Positions 27,413-34,262 of a stretch of 64,000 nt of DNA are shown here, one piece after another. Where the stretch lies: contig NIVC01001253.1 in the NCBI GenBank assembly GCA_002269645.1, positions 186,001-250,000 of the forward strand, in the 5' to 3' direction. Below the pieces are notes generated by a model. The model saw only the letters and a list, made by a program, of their open reading frames with translations, ran no database searches and was not told the DNA's origin. This DNA is from Macrostomum lignano (Eukaryota). Positions within the stretch are counted from its first letter, which is position 1, and every line of letters starts with the position of its first letter. Position numbers and translations under genes: made by a program.

Positions 27413-30400
27413 ATGTCTCTGCAAGACCTGATGAAGTACAGAGACAGCGGCGAGCTGTCCGATGTCACCATCGTTGTTGAAGGGGAAGAGCTCAAGCTGC
27501 ACAAGTTCCCGCTCTACATCAAGTCGGATTACTTTAAAGAGGTCGCGGCAGAGTCTGGCAAAGATCAAGTCGAGCTTGAAGAATTTCCTGGCGGAGCTGC
27601 TTGCTTCAAAGTTATTGCGGATTTCTGCTATAATAAGAAGATCGACATCAGCCTGGAGAATGTGGCCCAGCTCAGGTGAGCTGCTGACTGAGTGCTTGAT
27701 TCCTGCTCTGGCTCAGCCGTCTTTTAGATCTTTAGATAGTTGGATTGAGGTTAGACTATATAATTAGCAAGATGGATCAGGATTAGAGTAGATCATTAGC
27801 TAGATAGATTGAGATTAGAGTATATCATTAGCCAAATAGATTGAAATTAGGGTAGATCATTAGCTAGATAGATTGAGATTAGAGTAGATCATTAGCTAGA
27901 TAGATTGAAATTAGGGTAGATAATTAGCTAGATAGATTGAGATTAGAGCAGATCATTAGCTAGATAGATAGTGATTAGAGTAGATCCTTAGCTAGATAGA
28001 TAGTGATTAGAGTAGATCCTTAGCTAGATAGATTGAGATTAGAGTATATCATTAGCCAAATAGATTGAGATTAGAGTAGATCATTAGCTAGATAGATTGA
28101 GATTAAAGTAGATGATTAGCTAGATAGATTGAGATTAGAGTAGATCATTAGATAGATGGGGATTGGACTAGATCATTAGCTAGATAGATTGGGATTGGAC
28201 TAGATCATTAGCTAGATGGATTATGATTAAAGTAGATCATTAGCTTGATGGATTATGATTAGAGTAGATCATTAGCTTGATGGATTGGGATTGGACTAGA
28301 TCATTAGCTAGATGGATTATGACCTCATCATCTCCCCGCCACATCCCCTCAGATGCGGCGCCGAGTACCTGAAGATGGCCGGCGACAACAACCTGATCGA
28401 CCTGACGGAGCGCTACCTGGACGACATCATCCGCTCCGCCCAGATGTCCCGCTCCCTGTCGCCCATCGTGGACCTGATCAGTCGTACCGCCTGTCTCGGA
28501 CCCGCGGCCGAGGAGGCGAAGATCGCCGAGCGCTGCTTCGCCGCAGTCATGGACGTCTGGACAAAACCTGGCCGAGTCGACGCCTTGGTCGTGGATCGAC
28601 TGTTGCGTCTGCCGCTAGACTGGTTCGAACGGCTGGCCAAGTCCTGCGGCTCCGAGGGCGAGCGGCAGCTGCGGCCCCTGGCAGAGCTGGCAACCCGCTA
28701 CCTGCACCGCGTGTTCCAGCGCGACACCGACCTGCAGAAGCAGCAGCAGCAGCAGAAAAAGCCGGAGAAGAAGAAAGAGCAGGAGAAGAGCGCCGAGAAG
28801 GAGAAGGACGATGATGACGCTGGTGAGGAGGCTGCGGAGGAGCCGCAGCAGGAGCAGCAGGAGGCGAGAGAGGAGCAGCAGCAGCAGGAGGAGGAGGCTG
28901 GAGAGGCATCCGATGCAGAGGCAGATGGCGGAGACAAGAAGAAGCAACAGCAGCAGCAGCAGCAGGTGAGACAGCACACCCTGACAGCACTATGACAATC
29001 TGACGTACTGACATAATCTGATACATCATCATCATCACCATCATCATCATCATCATCATCATCACCATCATCATCATCATCATCATCATCACCATCATCA
29101 TCATCATCATCATCATCATCATCATCATCATCATCACGATCATCATCATCCCCACTATCCCCAGCAGCAGCAGCAAAATGAGCCCAAGGAGCCAACCGGC
29201 GAGGTCCTCGACCGCGTCATCGGCAGCCTGCCGGAGCCGACACCCCTCGCCGAGGTGATCAGCGGGGACTGGATCCGACTGGCCCTGCTGGCCAGCGAGC
29301 AGTACAGCTGCCAGTGCAGGCCGCGGCTGCTCCAGCTCGCTGGCAACATGCTGCACCGGTTCCGTCAGGAGGAGCTCAAGCAGATGCCTTCGCCGGTGCT
29401 CTGCGACATCGTCAGCAGCACCGCGGCTGCCATGGGCGGCGACGCCGGCGCCAGCGGCGAGGCCCAGGTTCTGTCTGGCGTCATCGACAATCACCTGCTG
29501 GACTTGGCCCGGGCTGGCAGCCTCACGGCCGAGGAGTTCGCCAAATTGGCCGCCAGCGTGCCGGCTGACTACAGGGCCAGCCACGACACCCTGTATGAGG
29601 CTGCCGAGACATTGCTTACTGCCGGTGAGATGGGTGTGGGACTGCTGGTGTGTGGGACTGCTGGTGTGTGGGACTGTTAGTGTGTGGGACTGCTGGGTGT
29701 GTGGGACTGCTGGGTTGTGTGGGACTGCTGGGTGTGTGGGACTGCTGGGTGTGTGCGACTGCCGGGGGTGTGTGGGACTGCTGGGTGTGTGGGACTGCTG
29801 GGTGTGTGGGATTTCAGGGTGTGTGGGATTTCAGGGTGTGCGGGACTGCTGGGTGTGTGGGATTTCAGGGTGTGTGGGATTTCAGGGTGTGTGGGATTTC
29901 AGGGTGTGTGGGACTGCTGGGTTGTGTGGGACTGCTGGGTGTGGGACTGCTGGGTGTGTGGGACTTCAGGGTGTGTGGGACTTCAGGGTGTGTGGGACTT
30001 CAGGGTGTGTGGGATTTCAGGGTGTGTGGGACTTCAGGTTGTGTGCGTGGGACTTTCAGGTGGGAACTATTGGGTTGCTGAGTGTGATTTTGGAACCTCA
30101 GTGTGTGGGTTGTCAGTGTGTGATGTGTGGGACTCATTATTTTGTATGGGAATTGACAGTGTGGGATTAAGAAGTATGGGATTCGAAAGTGTGGGATTTG
30201 GAAGTTTGGGATTTATAAGTGTGGGATTTGAAGGAGTGGGATTCGGAAGTGTGGGATTCGGAAGTTTTGGATTTGGAGGTGTGGGATTCGGAAATCCGGG
30301 ATTCAGGAATCGGAGATGTGGGATTGGTAGCTTTTAAAGTGTGGAAGTTGAGCAATCAATATGTCAATCAAGAAAGTCAATATTGTGCACCGAGTAACCT

Positions 30401-33400: not shown

Positions 33401-34262
33401 CTCGCCACTCACATTGTCACTCTACTCGTCACTCGATCACTTTGTCTCTCTACTCGCCACTCATTTTGCCACTCTACTCGTCACTCGATCACTTTGTCAC
33501 TCTACTCGCCACTCACATTGTCACTCTACTCGCCACTCACATTGTCACTCTACTCGTCACTCACTTTGTCACTCTACTCGCCACTCACATTGTCACTCTA
33601 CTCGTCACTCGATCACTTTGTCACTCTACTCGCCACTCACATTGTCACTCTACTCGTCACTCACTTTGTCACTCTACTCGTCACTCACTTTGTCACTCTA
33701 CTCGTCACTCGATCACTTTGTCTCTCTACTCGCCACTCACATTGTCACTCTACTCGTCACTCGATCACTTTGTCTCTCTACTCGTCACTCACATTGTCAC
33801 TCTACTCGTCACTCGATCACCTTGTCACTCTACTCGCCACTCACATTGTCACTCTACTCGTCACTCAATTTGTCACTCTACTCGTCACTCACTTTGTCAC
33901 TCTACTCGTCACTCGATCACTTTGTCTCTCTACTCGTCACTCACATTGTCACTCTACTCGTCACTCGATCACTTTGTCACTCTACTCGCCACTCACATTG
34001 TCACTCTACTCGTCACTCAATTTGTCACTCTACTCGTCACTCACTTTGTCACTCTACTCGTCACTCACATTGTCACTCGCTCACTTTTCTCTTTGTCGCA
34101 GGCAAGTTCGACTCAGACTTTGACGCCTCATCCGGTCTTCGCTATTCGGCCCTTGGCGGCTACTCGGACACGGCTGCCTACCCGGACACTGACCGGGGCG
34201 CCCGGCTGGACTTCCAGTACAGCGGAGCCAGCGGCGGTCGCTACTCGTCCAGAAAATGGTGA
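27413..34262 (+). CDS. BTB/POZ + NPH3-domain protein (NPH3/RPT2-like), 6 exons, 593 aa
   Basis: Exons 27413-27675, 28353-28965, 29165-29624, 30441-30604, 32270-32390 and 34102-34262 are all phase-compatible (1782 nt). BTB: LHKFPL...FPGGAACFKVIADFCYN...NVAQLRCGAEYLKM..NNLIDLTERYL. NPH3-type C-terminal half: IDNHLLDLAR...FAKLAASVPADYRASHDTLYEAAE...VDLSRC. A possible extra in-frame exon at 31689-31859 has low confidence. Confidence 0.88.
27770..28315. repeat. 32-bp minisatellite GAGATTAGAGTAGATCATTAGCTAGATAGATT (intron 1 of the BTB-NPH3 gene)
   Basis: Directly visible. It is the reverse complement of the array at 30765-31580. Confidence 0.95.
29023..29150. repeat. (CAT)n microsatellite in intron 2
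   Basis: Directly visible. Confidence 0.98.
29630..30330. repeat. 17/18-bp GT-rich minisatellite (GTGTGGGACTGCTGGGT) in intron 3
   Basis: Directly visible; degenerates rightwards. Confidence 0.95.
30765..31580. repeat. 32-bp minisatellite AATCCATGTAGCTAAGGCTCTAATCTAATCCT in intron 4
   Basis: Directly visible. Confidence 0.95.
32570..34080. repeat. 24-bp-based minisatellite TCACTCTACTCGTCACTCACATTG in the last intron
   Basis: Directly visible; produces the long HSTRHSHC / LVTHIVT ORFs. Confidence 0.97.

Follow-up and report, generated by a model that had tools for sequence, protein, structure and literature searches.

The window, i.e. the whole stretch of 64,000 nucleotides of Macrostomum lignano contig NIVC01001253.1 analysed here, carries at positions 27413-34262 of the + strand an intact BTB-NPH3 gene. 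The gene has six exons, every border is GT..AG, and the introns are filled with minisatellites (units of 32, 3, 17, 32 and 24 bp). The features of the locus are as follows:

27413..27675, + strand: exon 1, from the ATG to aa 87, phase-2 donor; most of the BTB domain (LHKFPL, FPGG, ADFCY)
27725..28318: intron 1 minisatellite, 32-bp unit, about 19 copies
28353..28965, + strand: exon 2, end of the BTB domain (RCGAEYLKM), BACK-like first NPH3 half (aa 99-205) and most of the Gln/Glu/Lys-rich insert
29165..29624, + strand: exon 3, core of the second NPH3 half (VLDRVI..LP, CQCRPRLLQLAG, IDNHLLDLARAGSLTAEEFAKLAASVPADYRASHDTLYEAAETLL); its 3' border is the conserved phase-1 intron
29634..30309: intron 3 minisatellites, 17-bp and 15/45-bp units, within the evolutionarily conserved phase-1 intron
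30441..30628, + strand: exon 4, end of the NPH3 domain (DLSRC..LQRALDKGAFPAKVVCQAAIDLA); in-frame donors at 30604 (593 aa, first-pass annotation) and 30628 (601 aa, database models)
30744..31582: intron 4 minisatellite, 32-bp unit, about 26 copies
32270..32390, + strand: exon 5, start of the disordered Ser/Gly/Tyr/Arg-rich tail, as judged from pLDDT below 50 from aa 508
32565..34078: intron 5 minisatellite, 24-bp unit, about 61 copies, with a 180-bp higher-order repeat
34102..34262, + strand: exon 6, the remaining tail (...GGRYSSRKW), then the stop codon

The first-pass annotation, made from the sequence alone, had described a phase-consistent open reading frame of 593 aa. Splicing the six exons gave a product of exactly this length, which contains all of the peptides quoted in that annotation. 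The database models (P0001-P0003) use the second in-frame donor of exon 4 at 30628 (AGG/gtgagc), which adds VDGKFARR and gives a product of 601 aa. Exon 2 contains a candidate internal donor at 28710/28711, the use of which would drop the Gln/Glu-rich insert; in database model P0001, YLHR is joined straight to exon 3. The UniProt label of the M. lignano gene is already "BTB/NPH3 domain-containing".

The neighbouring genes are of animal type (P450, haspin-like and teneurin-like). A second M. lignano assembly contains a copy on a 721-kb contig (L001) with the same exon structure and borders. Exon 1 is 98% identical between the copies and exon 4, up to 30628, is 100% identical, while the intron 1 arrays are unequal in length. 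There are only 15 exonic base differences in total, which makes the two copies either alleles or the products of a very recent duplication. The M. lignano paralogs form at least three groups. The animal setting, the repeat-filled introns and the improbability of contamination, all of them proposed earlier, thus agree with what was found, the last on the strength of the neighbours and of the identical exon borders in the second assembly.

Domain identity and predicted structure

Both domains were matched in Pfam above the curated cut-offs, i.e. BTB (PF00651) at aa 7-98 (E=7.2e-12, 45.9 bits, cut-off 20.5) and NPH3 (PF03000) at aa 343-464 (E=1.1e-11, 45.4 bits, cut-off 27). The NPH3 match covers profile positions 105-251 of 258 only. 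When the animal and plant NRL profiles were compared using hhalign, the alignment had a probability of 100% (E=6.2e-57) over 409 columns and ran from aa 7 to 491 of the window protein against 19-501 of the plant profile. In other words, the two are collinear over the BTB and the whole NPH3 domain, and aa 99-205 align with the N-terminal half of NPH3 in the plant profile. Taken singly, 18 of the 28 animal members match PF03000 (best 2.2e-18), and the hemichordate member alone reaches plant NRLs at 1e-36 to 1e-25 in a single-sequence phmmer search.

The plant NRL family comprises NPH3, RPT2, NCH1, NPY/MAB4/MEL, NRL5, SR1IP1 and DOT3. Its members share with the window protein an N-terminal BTB domain with the signature LHKFPL, (F)PGG, [AK][DK]FCYG and NV..LRCAAEYL.M, and this signature (LHKFPL / PGG..F / FCYG / NV..LRCAAEYL.M) is nearly invariant in the animal as well as in the plant alignment. 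Also shared are a collinear NPH3 domain that is interrupted midway by a variable linker, the NPH3 pattern D.YL...A....L....F..L....P...R..HD.LY followed by ..LS.E....A......P, and a disordered C-terminal extension. Nevertheless, the animal clade is a separate and very divergent branch (200/200 bootstrap), and the plant-derived PF03000 model gives the window protein 45 bits as opposed to 180-300 bits for plant proteins.

It is very improbable that the gene encodes an ordinary animal BTB-BACK(-Kelch) protein to which NPH3 was wrongly assigned. Such a reading could appeal to the PDB sequence and fold searches, which yielded only BTB and BTB-BACK proteins, and to the limited span of the Pfam match. 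The PDB sequence search and NCBIfam gave nothing past BTB or low-complexity noise. There is no NPH3 structure in the PDB, however, so these searches could not have returned one. The Pfam score is far over the curated cut-off, the hhalign alignment extends across the BTB and the entire NPH3 domain, and the family-specific motifs are common to the window protein and the plant NRLs. Moreover, no Pfam match to BACK (PF07707) or Kelch was found in the window protein at E values up to 10, and the structural model has no beta-propeller. A misidentified BTB-Kelch gene was rejected on the Pfam NPH3 match, the hhalign result and the hemichordate phmmer matches to plants. The central claim of the first-pass annotation, an intact BTB-NPH3 gene of the NRL type that is native to an animal genome, is therefore supported by Pfam and hhalign, as well as by the neighbouring genes and the second copy.

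Database look-up and structure prediction used database protein P0001, identical to the 601-aa product, and the near-identical second-copy protein P0002. pLDDT exceeds 90 for aa 1-205, staying above this value to about aa 220, and for aa 300-505; it falls below 50 from aa 508, which corresponds to a disordered tail. The model has a BTB fold, with target-normalised TM-scores of 0.7-0.8 to solved BTB domains, and no beta-structure outside it. The best PDB matches are BTB-BACK adaptors solved with CUL3, namely KBTBD2, KBTBD4, vaccinia A55 and KLHL22 (8h37, 8vrt, 6i2m, 8khp), in which the BTB domain and its helical extension superpose over about 200-226 columns. Sequence similarity to the BTB-BACK adaptors is confined to the BTB domain. 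Unlike KLHL and KBTBD proteins, the window protein has no Pfam BACK domain, Kelch propeller or other beta-rich substrate domain; its helices run on to form a further solenoid, about 200 aa long and specific to NPH3. This second NPH3 half was modelled as all-alpha and had no solved counterpart in the PDB fold search.

A Gln/Glu-rich insert had been thought to separate the BTB from the NPH3 domain. The profile alignment places it inside the NPH3 domain instead (aa 206-303), at the position of the variable plant linker. It is acidic and of low complexity (Q 28%, E 20%, K 13%), and such a long Q/E/K loop is unlike the linkers of plant NRLs. At the other end of the domain, one long helix (aa 482-503) is followed by disorder, while other animal members have a longer helix after the NPH3 domain (LRSELDS.K.I..MQ.EEL). 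Many plant NRLs carry a coiled coil at this place. The tail had been described as Tyr/Ser/Gly-rich, and its composition (Ser/Gly/Tyr/Arg-rich) agrees with this. It also carries a [YFW]-P-[YF] motif.

The tail ends in a basic-aromatic sequence, and most animal members likewise have [RK]-[YFW] at the C terminus (..RKW, ..HRY, ..SRF). The plant matches end in ..RHSVS or ..RNSIS, i.e. in an R-x-S-x-S C terminus that we take to be the 14-3-3 site; no such C terminus is present in the window protein, which ends in ...GGRYSSRKW. A C-terminal R-x-S-x-S phospho-switch for 14-3-3, of the NPH3 S744 type, is described in PMC13017905. We note that this C terminus is a mark of some of the plant proteins and not a defining feature of the family.

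The animal family and its origin

An exhaustive hmmsearch with a profile of the NPH3 block gave 275 matches. P0071, a match of the profile search, was discarded as repeat junk. Homologs occur in eight phyla (Porifera, Cnidaria, Hemichordata, Nemertea, Annelida, Mollusca, Rotifera and Platyhelminthes), with octocorals among the cnidarians and parasites (Schistosoma, Opisthorchis, Paragonimus) among the flatworms. None from vertebrates, arthropods, nematodes or echinoderms was seen among the approximately 270 matches listed, most of which carry no taxon name. The animal homologs sit on chromosome-scale contigs, which makes it very unlikely that they are contaminants. Expression of a homolog is indicated by two independent transcript contigs with an uninterrupted open reading frame.

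Several members have been annotated automatically, such as the Octopus "phototropism 2-like" and "At1g30440-like", Haliotis "At5g48800-like", Mya "DOT3-like" and Dendronephthya "At3g08660" proteins, and the "root phototropism protein 2(-like)" of Xenia and Plakobranchus; further members are Schistosoma haematobium MS3_00004798 and Capitella CAPTEDRAFT_221817. These named homologs have the architecture of the window protein, belong to the same animal clade and are 23-50% identical to it. Most non-flatworm homologs retain the GMxD loop and the LRSELDS.K.I..MQ.EEL helix, whereas the loop of the window protein is degenerate; they also have 0-2 introns, as opposed to five in the M. lignano gene. 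The plant-derived names were assigned by annotation pipelines.

In the phylogenetic tree, animals and plants are split with a bootstrap support of 200/200. Within the animals, flatworms (182/200), gastropods (200/200) and a sponge-like group (197/200) were recovered, and the gene tree matches taxonomy. The divergence within animals (1.97) is greater than that within the sampled plants (1.31). The phase-1 intron after exon 3 is found at the same position and in the same phase in Macrostomum, Ptychodera and Haliotis, i.e. in a flatworm, a hemichordate and an abalone, and a macrostomorph relative has a matching donor. An intron of a Brachypodium NRL gene lies only 4 nt away from this position, a hint that the gene structure is ancient and common to both kingdoms.

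These sequence comparisons place the gene in a branch of the BTB-NPH3 (NRL) family that is metazoan, divergent and uncharacterised. It had been anticipated that the gene might fall into a well-characterised, broad metazoan orthogroup. The orthogroup does exist, spanning eight phyla with automatic annotations, but the literature search found no paper discussing animal NPH3 copies, so "well-characterised" does not apply.

The NPH3 family has been described as plant-specific (PMC11313873, PMC1257465, PMC4327156), which would favour the view that Macrostomum acquired the gene recently from a plant or alga by horizontal transfer, or that plant DNA contaminates the assembly. The probability of either is close to negligible. 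Animal genes flank the gene, a second assembly carries the same exon structure on a 721-kb contig, and M. lignano has no fewer than three paralog groups. In addition, homologs are present in eight animal phyla, animals are monophyletic against plants with the flatworms clustering together, an intron is common to flatworm, hemichordate and mollusc, and the score on the plant-derived Pfam model is far below that of plant proteins. Of the two origins offered in the first-pass annotation, an old lineage lost in model animals stands, while a transfer into the flatworm lineage is ruled out by the phyletic spread, the tree and the shared intron. Inheritance of the family across animals, from sponges to hemichordates, is thus supported; among the matches listed it was not seen in the usual model animals. 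Any transfer would have to predate the animal radiation.

In such a scenario the family would not have come down from LECA. It would have passed once, over 600 million years ago, from the streptophyte lineage to the animal stem or the other way round, and would have descended vertically in both thereafter. A patchy distribution over two kingdoms is what an ancient transfer would produce, and all of the sequences recognised among the 150 + 120 matches listed were of plant or animal type, with no fungal, choanoflagellate or other protist names. The plant family has also been placed at the base of plants (PMC4327156). Nevertheless, we regard this scenario as unlikely, if worth keeping in mind. 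The Brachypodium intron hints at a common ancient structure, and the deep split together with the large divergence within animals fits very old separate histories. Moreover, because most matches have no taxon name, some of them (e.g. P0109) may come from protists.

We tentatively suggest that the NPH3/NRL scaffold, rather than having been invented by plants, could be an ancient eukaryotic BTB module that was present in the first animals and coupled CUL3 and/or vesicle traffic to membrane-associated signalling. If true, plant polarity and phototropism pathways would share core biochemistry with an unexplored animal pathway that is kept in schistosomes and other parasitic flatworms.

The presence of a full-length NPH3-homologous family in at least eight animal phyla corrects the evolutionary view of this large plant signalling family as plant-specific, although databases already flag animal BTB/NPH3 proteins. 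The animal members are an independent and highly divergent set in which the invariant core of NPH3, a domain whose molecular function is debated, can be located; the hhalign profile alignment shows which columns plants and animals have in common. An unstudied, conserved animal gene family is thereby exposed. It is open to experiment in M. lignano, where RNAi and transgenesis are available, and has members in human parasites (Schistosoma, Opisthorchis, Paragonimus) and no vertebrate counterpart among the named matches.

Proposed function

We consider it reasonably probable that this intact, native M. lignano gene of the metazoan BTB-NPH3 branch encodes a substrate adaptor or scaffold for CUL3, most likely a dimeric one. 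The BTB domain would dimerise, the BTB domain and the BACK-like first NPH3 half would dock onto CUL3, and the helical solenoid of the second NPH3 half, with the tail, would recruit partners or substrates; it is this combination that would make the protein an adaptor or scaffold. By analogy with plant NPH3, NPY/MAB4 and NRL5, it would probably act at membranes or in trafficking and polarity. Plant NRLs bind CUL3 and AGC-VIII kinases (phototropins, PINOID/D6PK); for the window protein, the pointer to CUL3 is its structural resemblance to CUL3-bound BTB-BACK adaptors. The recruiting role is an extrapolation, since the second NPH3 half has no solved counterpart.

The phi-x-[DE] motif (GMxD) in the alpha3-beta4 loop, a feature in common with KLHL/KBTBD adaptors, is found in many animal members, among them those of sponge, cnidarian, hemichordate and abalone. 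In flatworms, including the window protein, the phi-x-E loop is reduced to A-A-E or A-S-E, and these proteins may therefore bind CUL3 weakly or not at all. We also note that Pfam calls no BACK domain, which counts against the CUL3 adaptor reading.

An alternative is that the protein is not a CUL3 adaptor. Its BTB domain would then serve for dimerisation only, and the NPH3 domain would be the active part, hydrolysing nucleotides and binding Rab/SNARE proteins to regulate vesicle traffic and membrane polarity, a role that has been proposed for Arabidopsis NRL5. GTPase activity has been reported for seven plant NPH3-domain proteins, together with binding of Rab/VAMP by NRL5 (PMC11313873). The pattern of conservation points in the same direction: in animals it is highest in the second NPH3 half rather than in the loop that contacts CUL3, and this loop has degenerated in flatworms. 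On the other hand, the NPH3 domain is confidently modelled as all-alpha without a beta-sheet and is unlike any G-domain in the PDB, no nucleotide-binding motif is given in PMC11313873, and the BTB domain and first NPH3 half resemble CUL3-bound BTB-BACK adaptors. We judge this alternative to be rather unlikely and prefer the CUL3 adaptor or scaffold.

The "phototropism" label is no guide to function, and there is no link to light in the present results. Animals are not known to have phototropins, or phototropin or PIN partners; a phototropin partnership as in plants therefore cannot apply. The plant C-terminal 14-3-3 switch is likewise missing from the window protein. We also note that the CUL3 adaptor and trafficking roles can coexist.

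Domain composition and predicted fold

The Pfam scan of the protein encoded by the BTB + NPH3 gene (27413-34262, plus strand) returned BTB at amino acids 7-98 (45.9 bits) and NPH3 (PF03000) at amino acids 343-464 (45.4 bits, cut-off 27, profile positions 105-251), both above the curated thresholds, and nothing else meaningful. The assignment to the plant NPH3/RPT2-like (NRL) family, proposed in the first-pass annotation, was also upheld over the full core: an animal profile (n=28) and a plant NRL profile (n=29) could be aligned across 409 columns (probability 100%, E = 6.2e-57). 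Residues 7-491 are covered, collinearly with the plant BTB and the whole NPH3 domain. Residues 99-205 are the counterpart of the first half of the plant NPH3 domain, and residues 304-491 that of the second half, with D.YL..A....L....F..L....P...R..HD.LY and, at the end, the ..LS.E....A......P block. The Q/E/K-rich insert (amino acids 206-303; Q 28%, E 20%, K 13%) coincides with the plant variable linker and therefore lies inside the NPH3 domain, not between BTB and NPH3 as had been proposed.

The animal NPH3 proteins are very divergent from the plant ones. On Pfam's plant-built NPH3 model the window protein scores 45 bits versus 180-300 bits for plant-type outliers. As to family membership, PF03000 is matched individually by 18 of the 28 animal members, and a search with a hemichordate protein as the sole query recovers plant NRLs with E from 1e-36 to 1e-25 (identity 25-28%, across more than 70% of that protein).

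The AlphaFold2 model, calculated with the 28-sequence alignment, has a mean pLDDT of 79 and a pTM of 0.69; pLDDT exceeds 90 at residues 1-205 and 300-505, confidence is low in the insert, and disorder extends over residues 508-593. In Foldseek comparisons with the PDB the model matched BTB domains and, over ~200-226 columns, the CUL3-complexed BTB-BACK adaptors KBTBD2, KBTBD4, vaccinia A55 and KLHL22, so the BTB and the first NPH3 half look BTB-BACK-like. The CUL3-contact loop reads G/A-M-x-D in sponge, cnidarian, hemichordate and abalone members and is shortened to A-A-E or A-S-E in flatworms. Modelled alone, the second NPH3 half is an 11-helix all-alpha solenoid (pLDDT 91) that gave no significant match in the PDB (best E-value 0.015, generic helical repeats) and a weak likeness to the KLHL11 BTB-BACK structure. 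To our knowledge no structure of an NPH3 domain has been solved. The modelled NPH3 fold contains no beta-sheet, so it would not be a G-domain of the Ras or P-loop type. For plant NRL5, GTPase activity has been reported (PMC11313873), in a paper that gives no nucleotide-binding motif to check in the animal proteins; such activity in an animal NPH3 protein, if any, would require an unconventional site.

Gene model and genomic setting

The gene model was rebuilt from positions 27000-34700 of the window. Splicing the six exons proposed in the first-pass annotation returned the identical, phase-consistent 593-aa protein.

Exons of the BTB + NPH3 gene (all with GT..AG borders and consistent phase)
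27413-27675, +, exon 1
28353-28965, +, exon 2
29165-29624, +, exon 3
30441-30604, +, exon 4 (alternative donor 30628)
32270-32390, +, exon 5
34102-34262, +, exon 6

The second in-frame donor of exon 4 (30628, AGG|gtgagc) adds eight residues (VDGKFARR) and is chosen in all three database models of the gene, therefore the true product may be 601 aa long. One of these models, A0A1I8I678 (P0001, 516 aa), runs from ...YLHR within exon 2 straight into exon 3 (QQQQNEPK). Such a junction would require an in-frame donor at 28710|28711 (CGC|GTGTTC) inside exon 2 and would delete the entire 85-aa acidic insert (28710-28965); the insert-free form may be a genuine isoform or an artefact of annotation. Large minisatellites occupy the introns, their repeat units measuring 32, 3, 17, 15/45, 32 and 24 bp.

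Contamination of the assembly, earlier considered unlikely, is excluded by the neighbouring genes, which are typical of animals, and by a second M. lignano genomic copy (L001, given as second assembly, GCA_002269645.1, 721-kb contig). This copy has identical exon borders; the exons are 98-100% identical and the aligned introns 93-99%, with different satellite lengths. Among the 5.8 billion proteins searched were near-identical M. lignano proteins (91-97% identity), labelled "BTB domain-containing" or "NPH3 domain-containing" in UniProt, as well as more distant M. lignano paralogs and further relatives.

Neighbouring genes and minisatellite arrays in the window
3229-5325, +, cytochrome P450, two exons (two long ORF blocks, PF00067, 1e-29 and 1e-70)
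15075-15527, +, haspin-like kinase fragment, 150-aa ORF, probably a single haspin exon (PF12330, 3e-29, profile positions 244-322 only)
45085-47785 and 52882-55263, -, teneurin-like gene (EGF and teneurin-EGF repeats, YD-shell; 793-codon uninterrupted ORF with a teneurin YD-shell match, PF25023, 4e-27)
1200-2700, 6645-7116, 18360-19180, 20000-20800, 22785-23900, 24169-24927, minisatellite arrays
25286-26097, 37800-38800, 39964-40800, 42927-43379, 58536-60041, minisatellite arrays

The P450 blocks are ~490 bp apart, the gap presumably being an intron. A run of N at ~12600-13550 is an assembly gap of ~1 kb, which accounts for the GC of 0.197 in the 12-14 kb bin. Strand-biased minisatellite arrays, intronic and intergenic, reach an extraordinary density across the window (with a GC skew of -0.93 at 20-22 kb, for example) and give rise to numerous long spurious ORFs.

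Distribution and ancestry of the animal family

NPH3 is treated as plant-specific in all the papers found to comment on its distribution, e.g. Stogios 2005 (PMC1257465). We searched 1.84 billion representative proteins exhaustively with a profile of the NPH3-like block (without the BTB and the low-complexity insert), which gave 275 matches, 56 of them below 1e-10. Class 1 matches cover the whole profile and share the BTB signature, the acidic insert and the aromatic C-terminal residue; class 2 matches cover only positions ~89-183 and carry the R-x-S-x-S C-terminus, i.e. they are plant NRLs. Class 1 taxa were named through cluster look-ups and a second search with named sequences, and the animal family is far broader than had been supposed.

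Class 1 members by phylum
Porifera: Corticium candelabrum (at least three paralogs), Oscarella lobularis
Cnidaria, Octocorallia: Dendronephthya, Xenia
Hemichordata: Ptychodera, Glandiceps
Nemertea: Tubulanus, Lineus
Annelida: Owenia, Capitella
Mollusca: abalones, limpet, Littorina, Nucella, Physella, Bulinus, Plakobranchus, eight bivalve genera, octopuses
Rotifera: Adineta, Brachionus
Platyhelminthes: Macrostomum; monogenean Cichlidogyrus; trematodes Schistosoma spp., Opisthorchis, Paragonimus, Calicophoron

Many class 1 members lie on chromosome-scale contigs. The names among the matches listed include no vertebrate, arthropod, nematode or echinoderm; as most of these matches are nameless, absence from these groups is only suggestive. 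The Oscarella homolog (L006 1-2899, OX382158.1) is intronless and immediately follows a second BTB gene encoding a 564-aa product, an arrangement suggestive of tandem duplication; the Corticium paralogs share a single 9-Mb contig. A 607-aa protein from an 18-kb ENA contig (P0109) gives a match to the animal-type NPH3 block at E=3e-7, has no BTB domain and no Pfam match, and may represent a further divergent or non-animal lineage.

A neighbour-joining tree was calculated from 31 animal-type and 33 plant-type sequences (428 columns, 200 bootstrap replicates). The split between animals and plants appeared in 200/200 replicates, the kingdom labels being taken from the source name for a minority and from sequence grouping for the remainder. 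The animal subtree tracks taxonomy (flatworms 182/200, Neodermata 165/200, gastropods 200/200, a sponge-like group 197/200), and the mean distance is larger among animals (1.97) than among the sampled plants (1.31).

Intron positions were compared by exact spliced mapping of four genes. Ptychodera flava and Haliotis cracherodii carry the exon 3/4 intron (...ETLLTA|GES..., phase 1) at the same alignment column and in the same phase. In a macrostomorph relative, a canonical donor (T|GTGAGT) occupies this site on a genomic contig, and ~20 metagenome or Logan gene calls stop exactly there, which we infer to be read-through into the same intron. The remaining four Macrostomum introns are lineage-specific. 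In a Brachypodium NRL, a phase-0 intron precedes the animal position by 4 nt; this is suggestive, not conclusive, of a common origin.

Taken together, the tree and the introns support vertical inheritance since the metazoan ancestor at least. Of the two origins first considered, the old animal lineage is thus retained, and horizontal transfer into flatworms is rejected. The presence of BTB-NPH3 genes in both plants and animals may go back to a common eukaryotic ancestor, or the gene may have passed between the plant and animal stems very early. We are highly confident of the identity and ancestry of the window protein taken jointly.

We found no paper on animal NPH3 proteins in the literature on NPH3 with Macrostomum, Schistosoma, invertebrates, horizontal gene transfer or the pipeline names. 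These names, carried by several animal members, are "root phototropism protein 2-like", "BTB/POZ domain-containing protein At1g30440-like" and "DOT3-like". The databases already recognise the domains and have passed plant names on to the animal proteins; for them, the gene's existence is therefore no novelty. What appears to be undescribed in the searched literature is an ancient, conserved and uncharacterised animal NRL branch. The first-pass annotation had set its reading against a protein lacking an NPH3 match and against a well-characterised, broad metazoan family; the match is present, and the family is broad and, in the searched literature, uncharacterised.

Proposed mechanism and the C-terminal tail

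The BTB domains would pair the window protein into a dimer that would dock onto CUL3 via the BTB and the BACK-like helices, and the NPH3 solenoid and the tail would hold partners presented by the docked dimer. By analogy with plant NRLs, the site of action would probably be membrane-associated trafficking or polarity. As a whole, this mechanism (BTB dimer, CUL3 docking, partner presentation) is tentative, and we place its chances slightly below even.

The tail is rich in Tyr, Ser and Gly, as first described (Ser 20%, Gly 13%, Tyr 11%, with Arg 10%). It lacks the R-x-S-x-S terminus of plant NRLs and has a basic-aromatic pair at its end in place of it. This pair is seen in most animal members (window 34210-34259; homologs P0005, P0008-P0022, P0046 and P0047), with the C-termini RKW, RRW, YGW, TKW, PRY, RRY, HRY, HRF, QRY, SRF and YRY. 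Many animal tails also carry [YFW]-P-[YF] just upstream of the C-terminus, i.e. YFPY in molluscs, YWPF in octocorals and FWPY in the hemichordate. Judged from the sequences, the animal C-terminal pattern looks like a conserved short linear motif.
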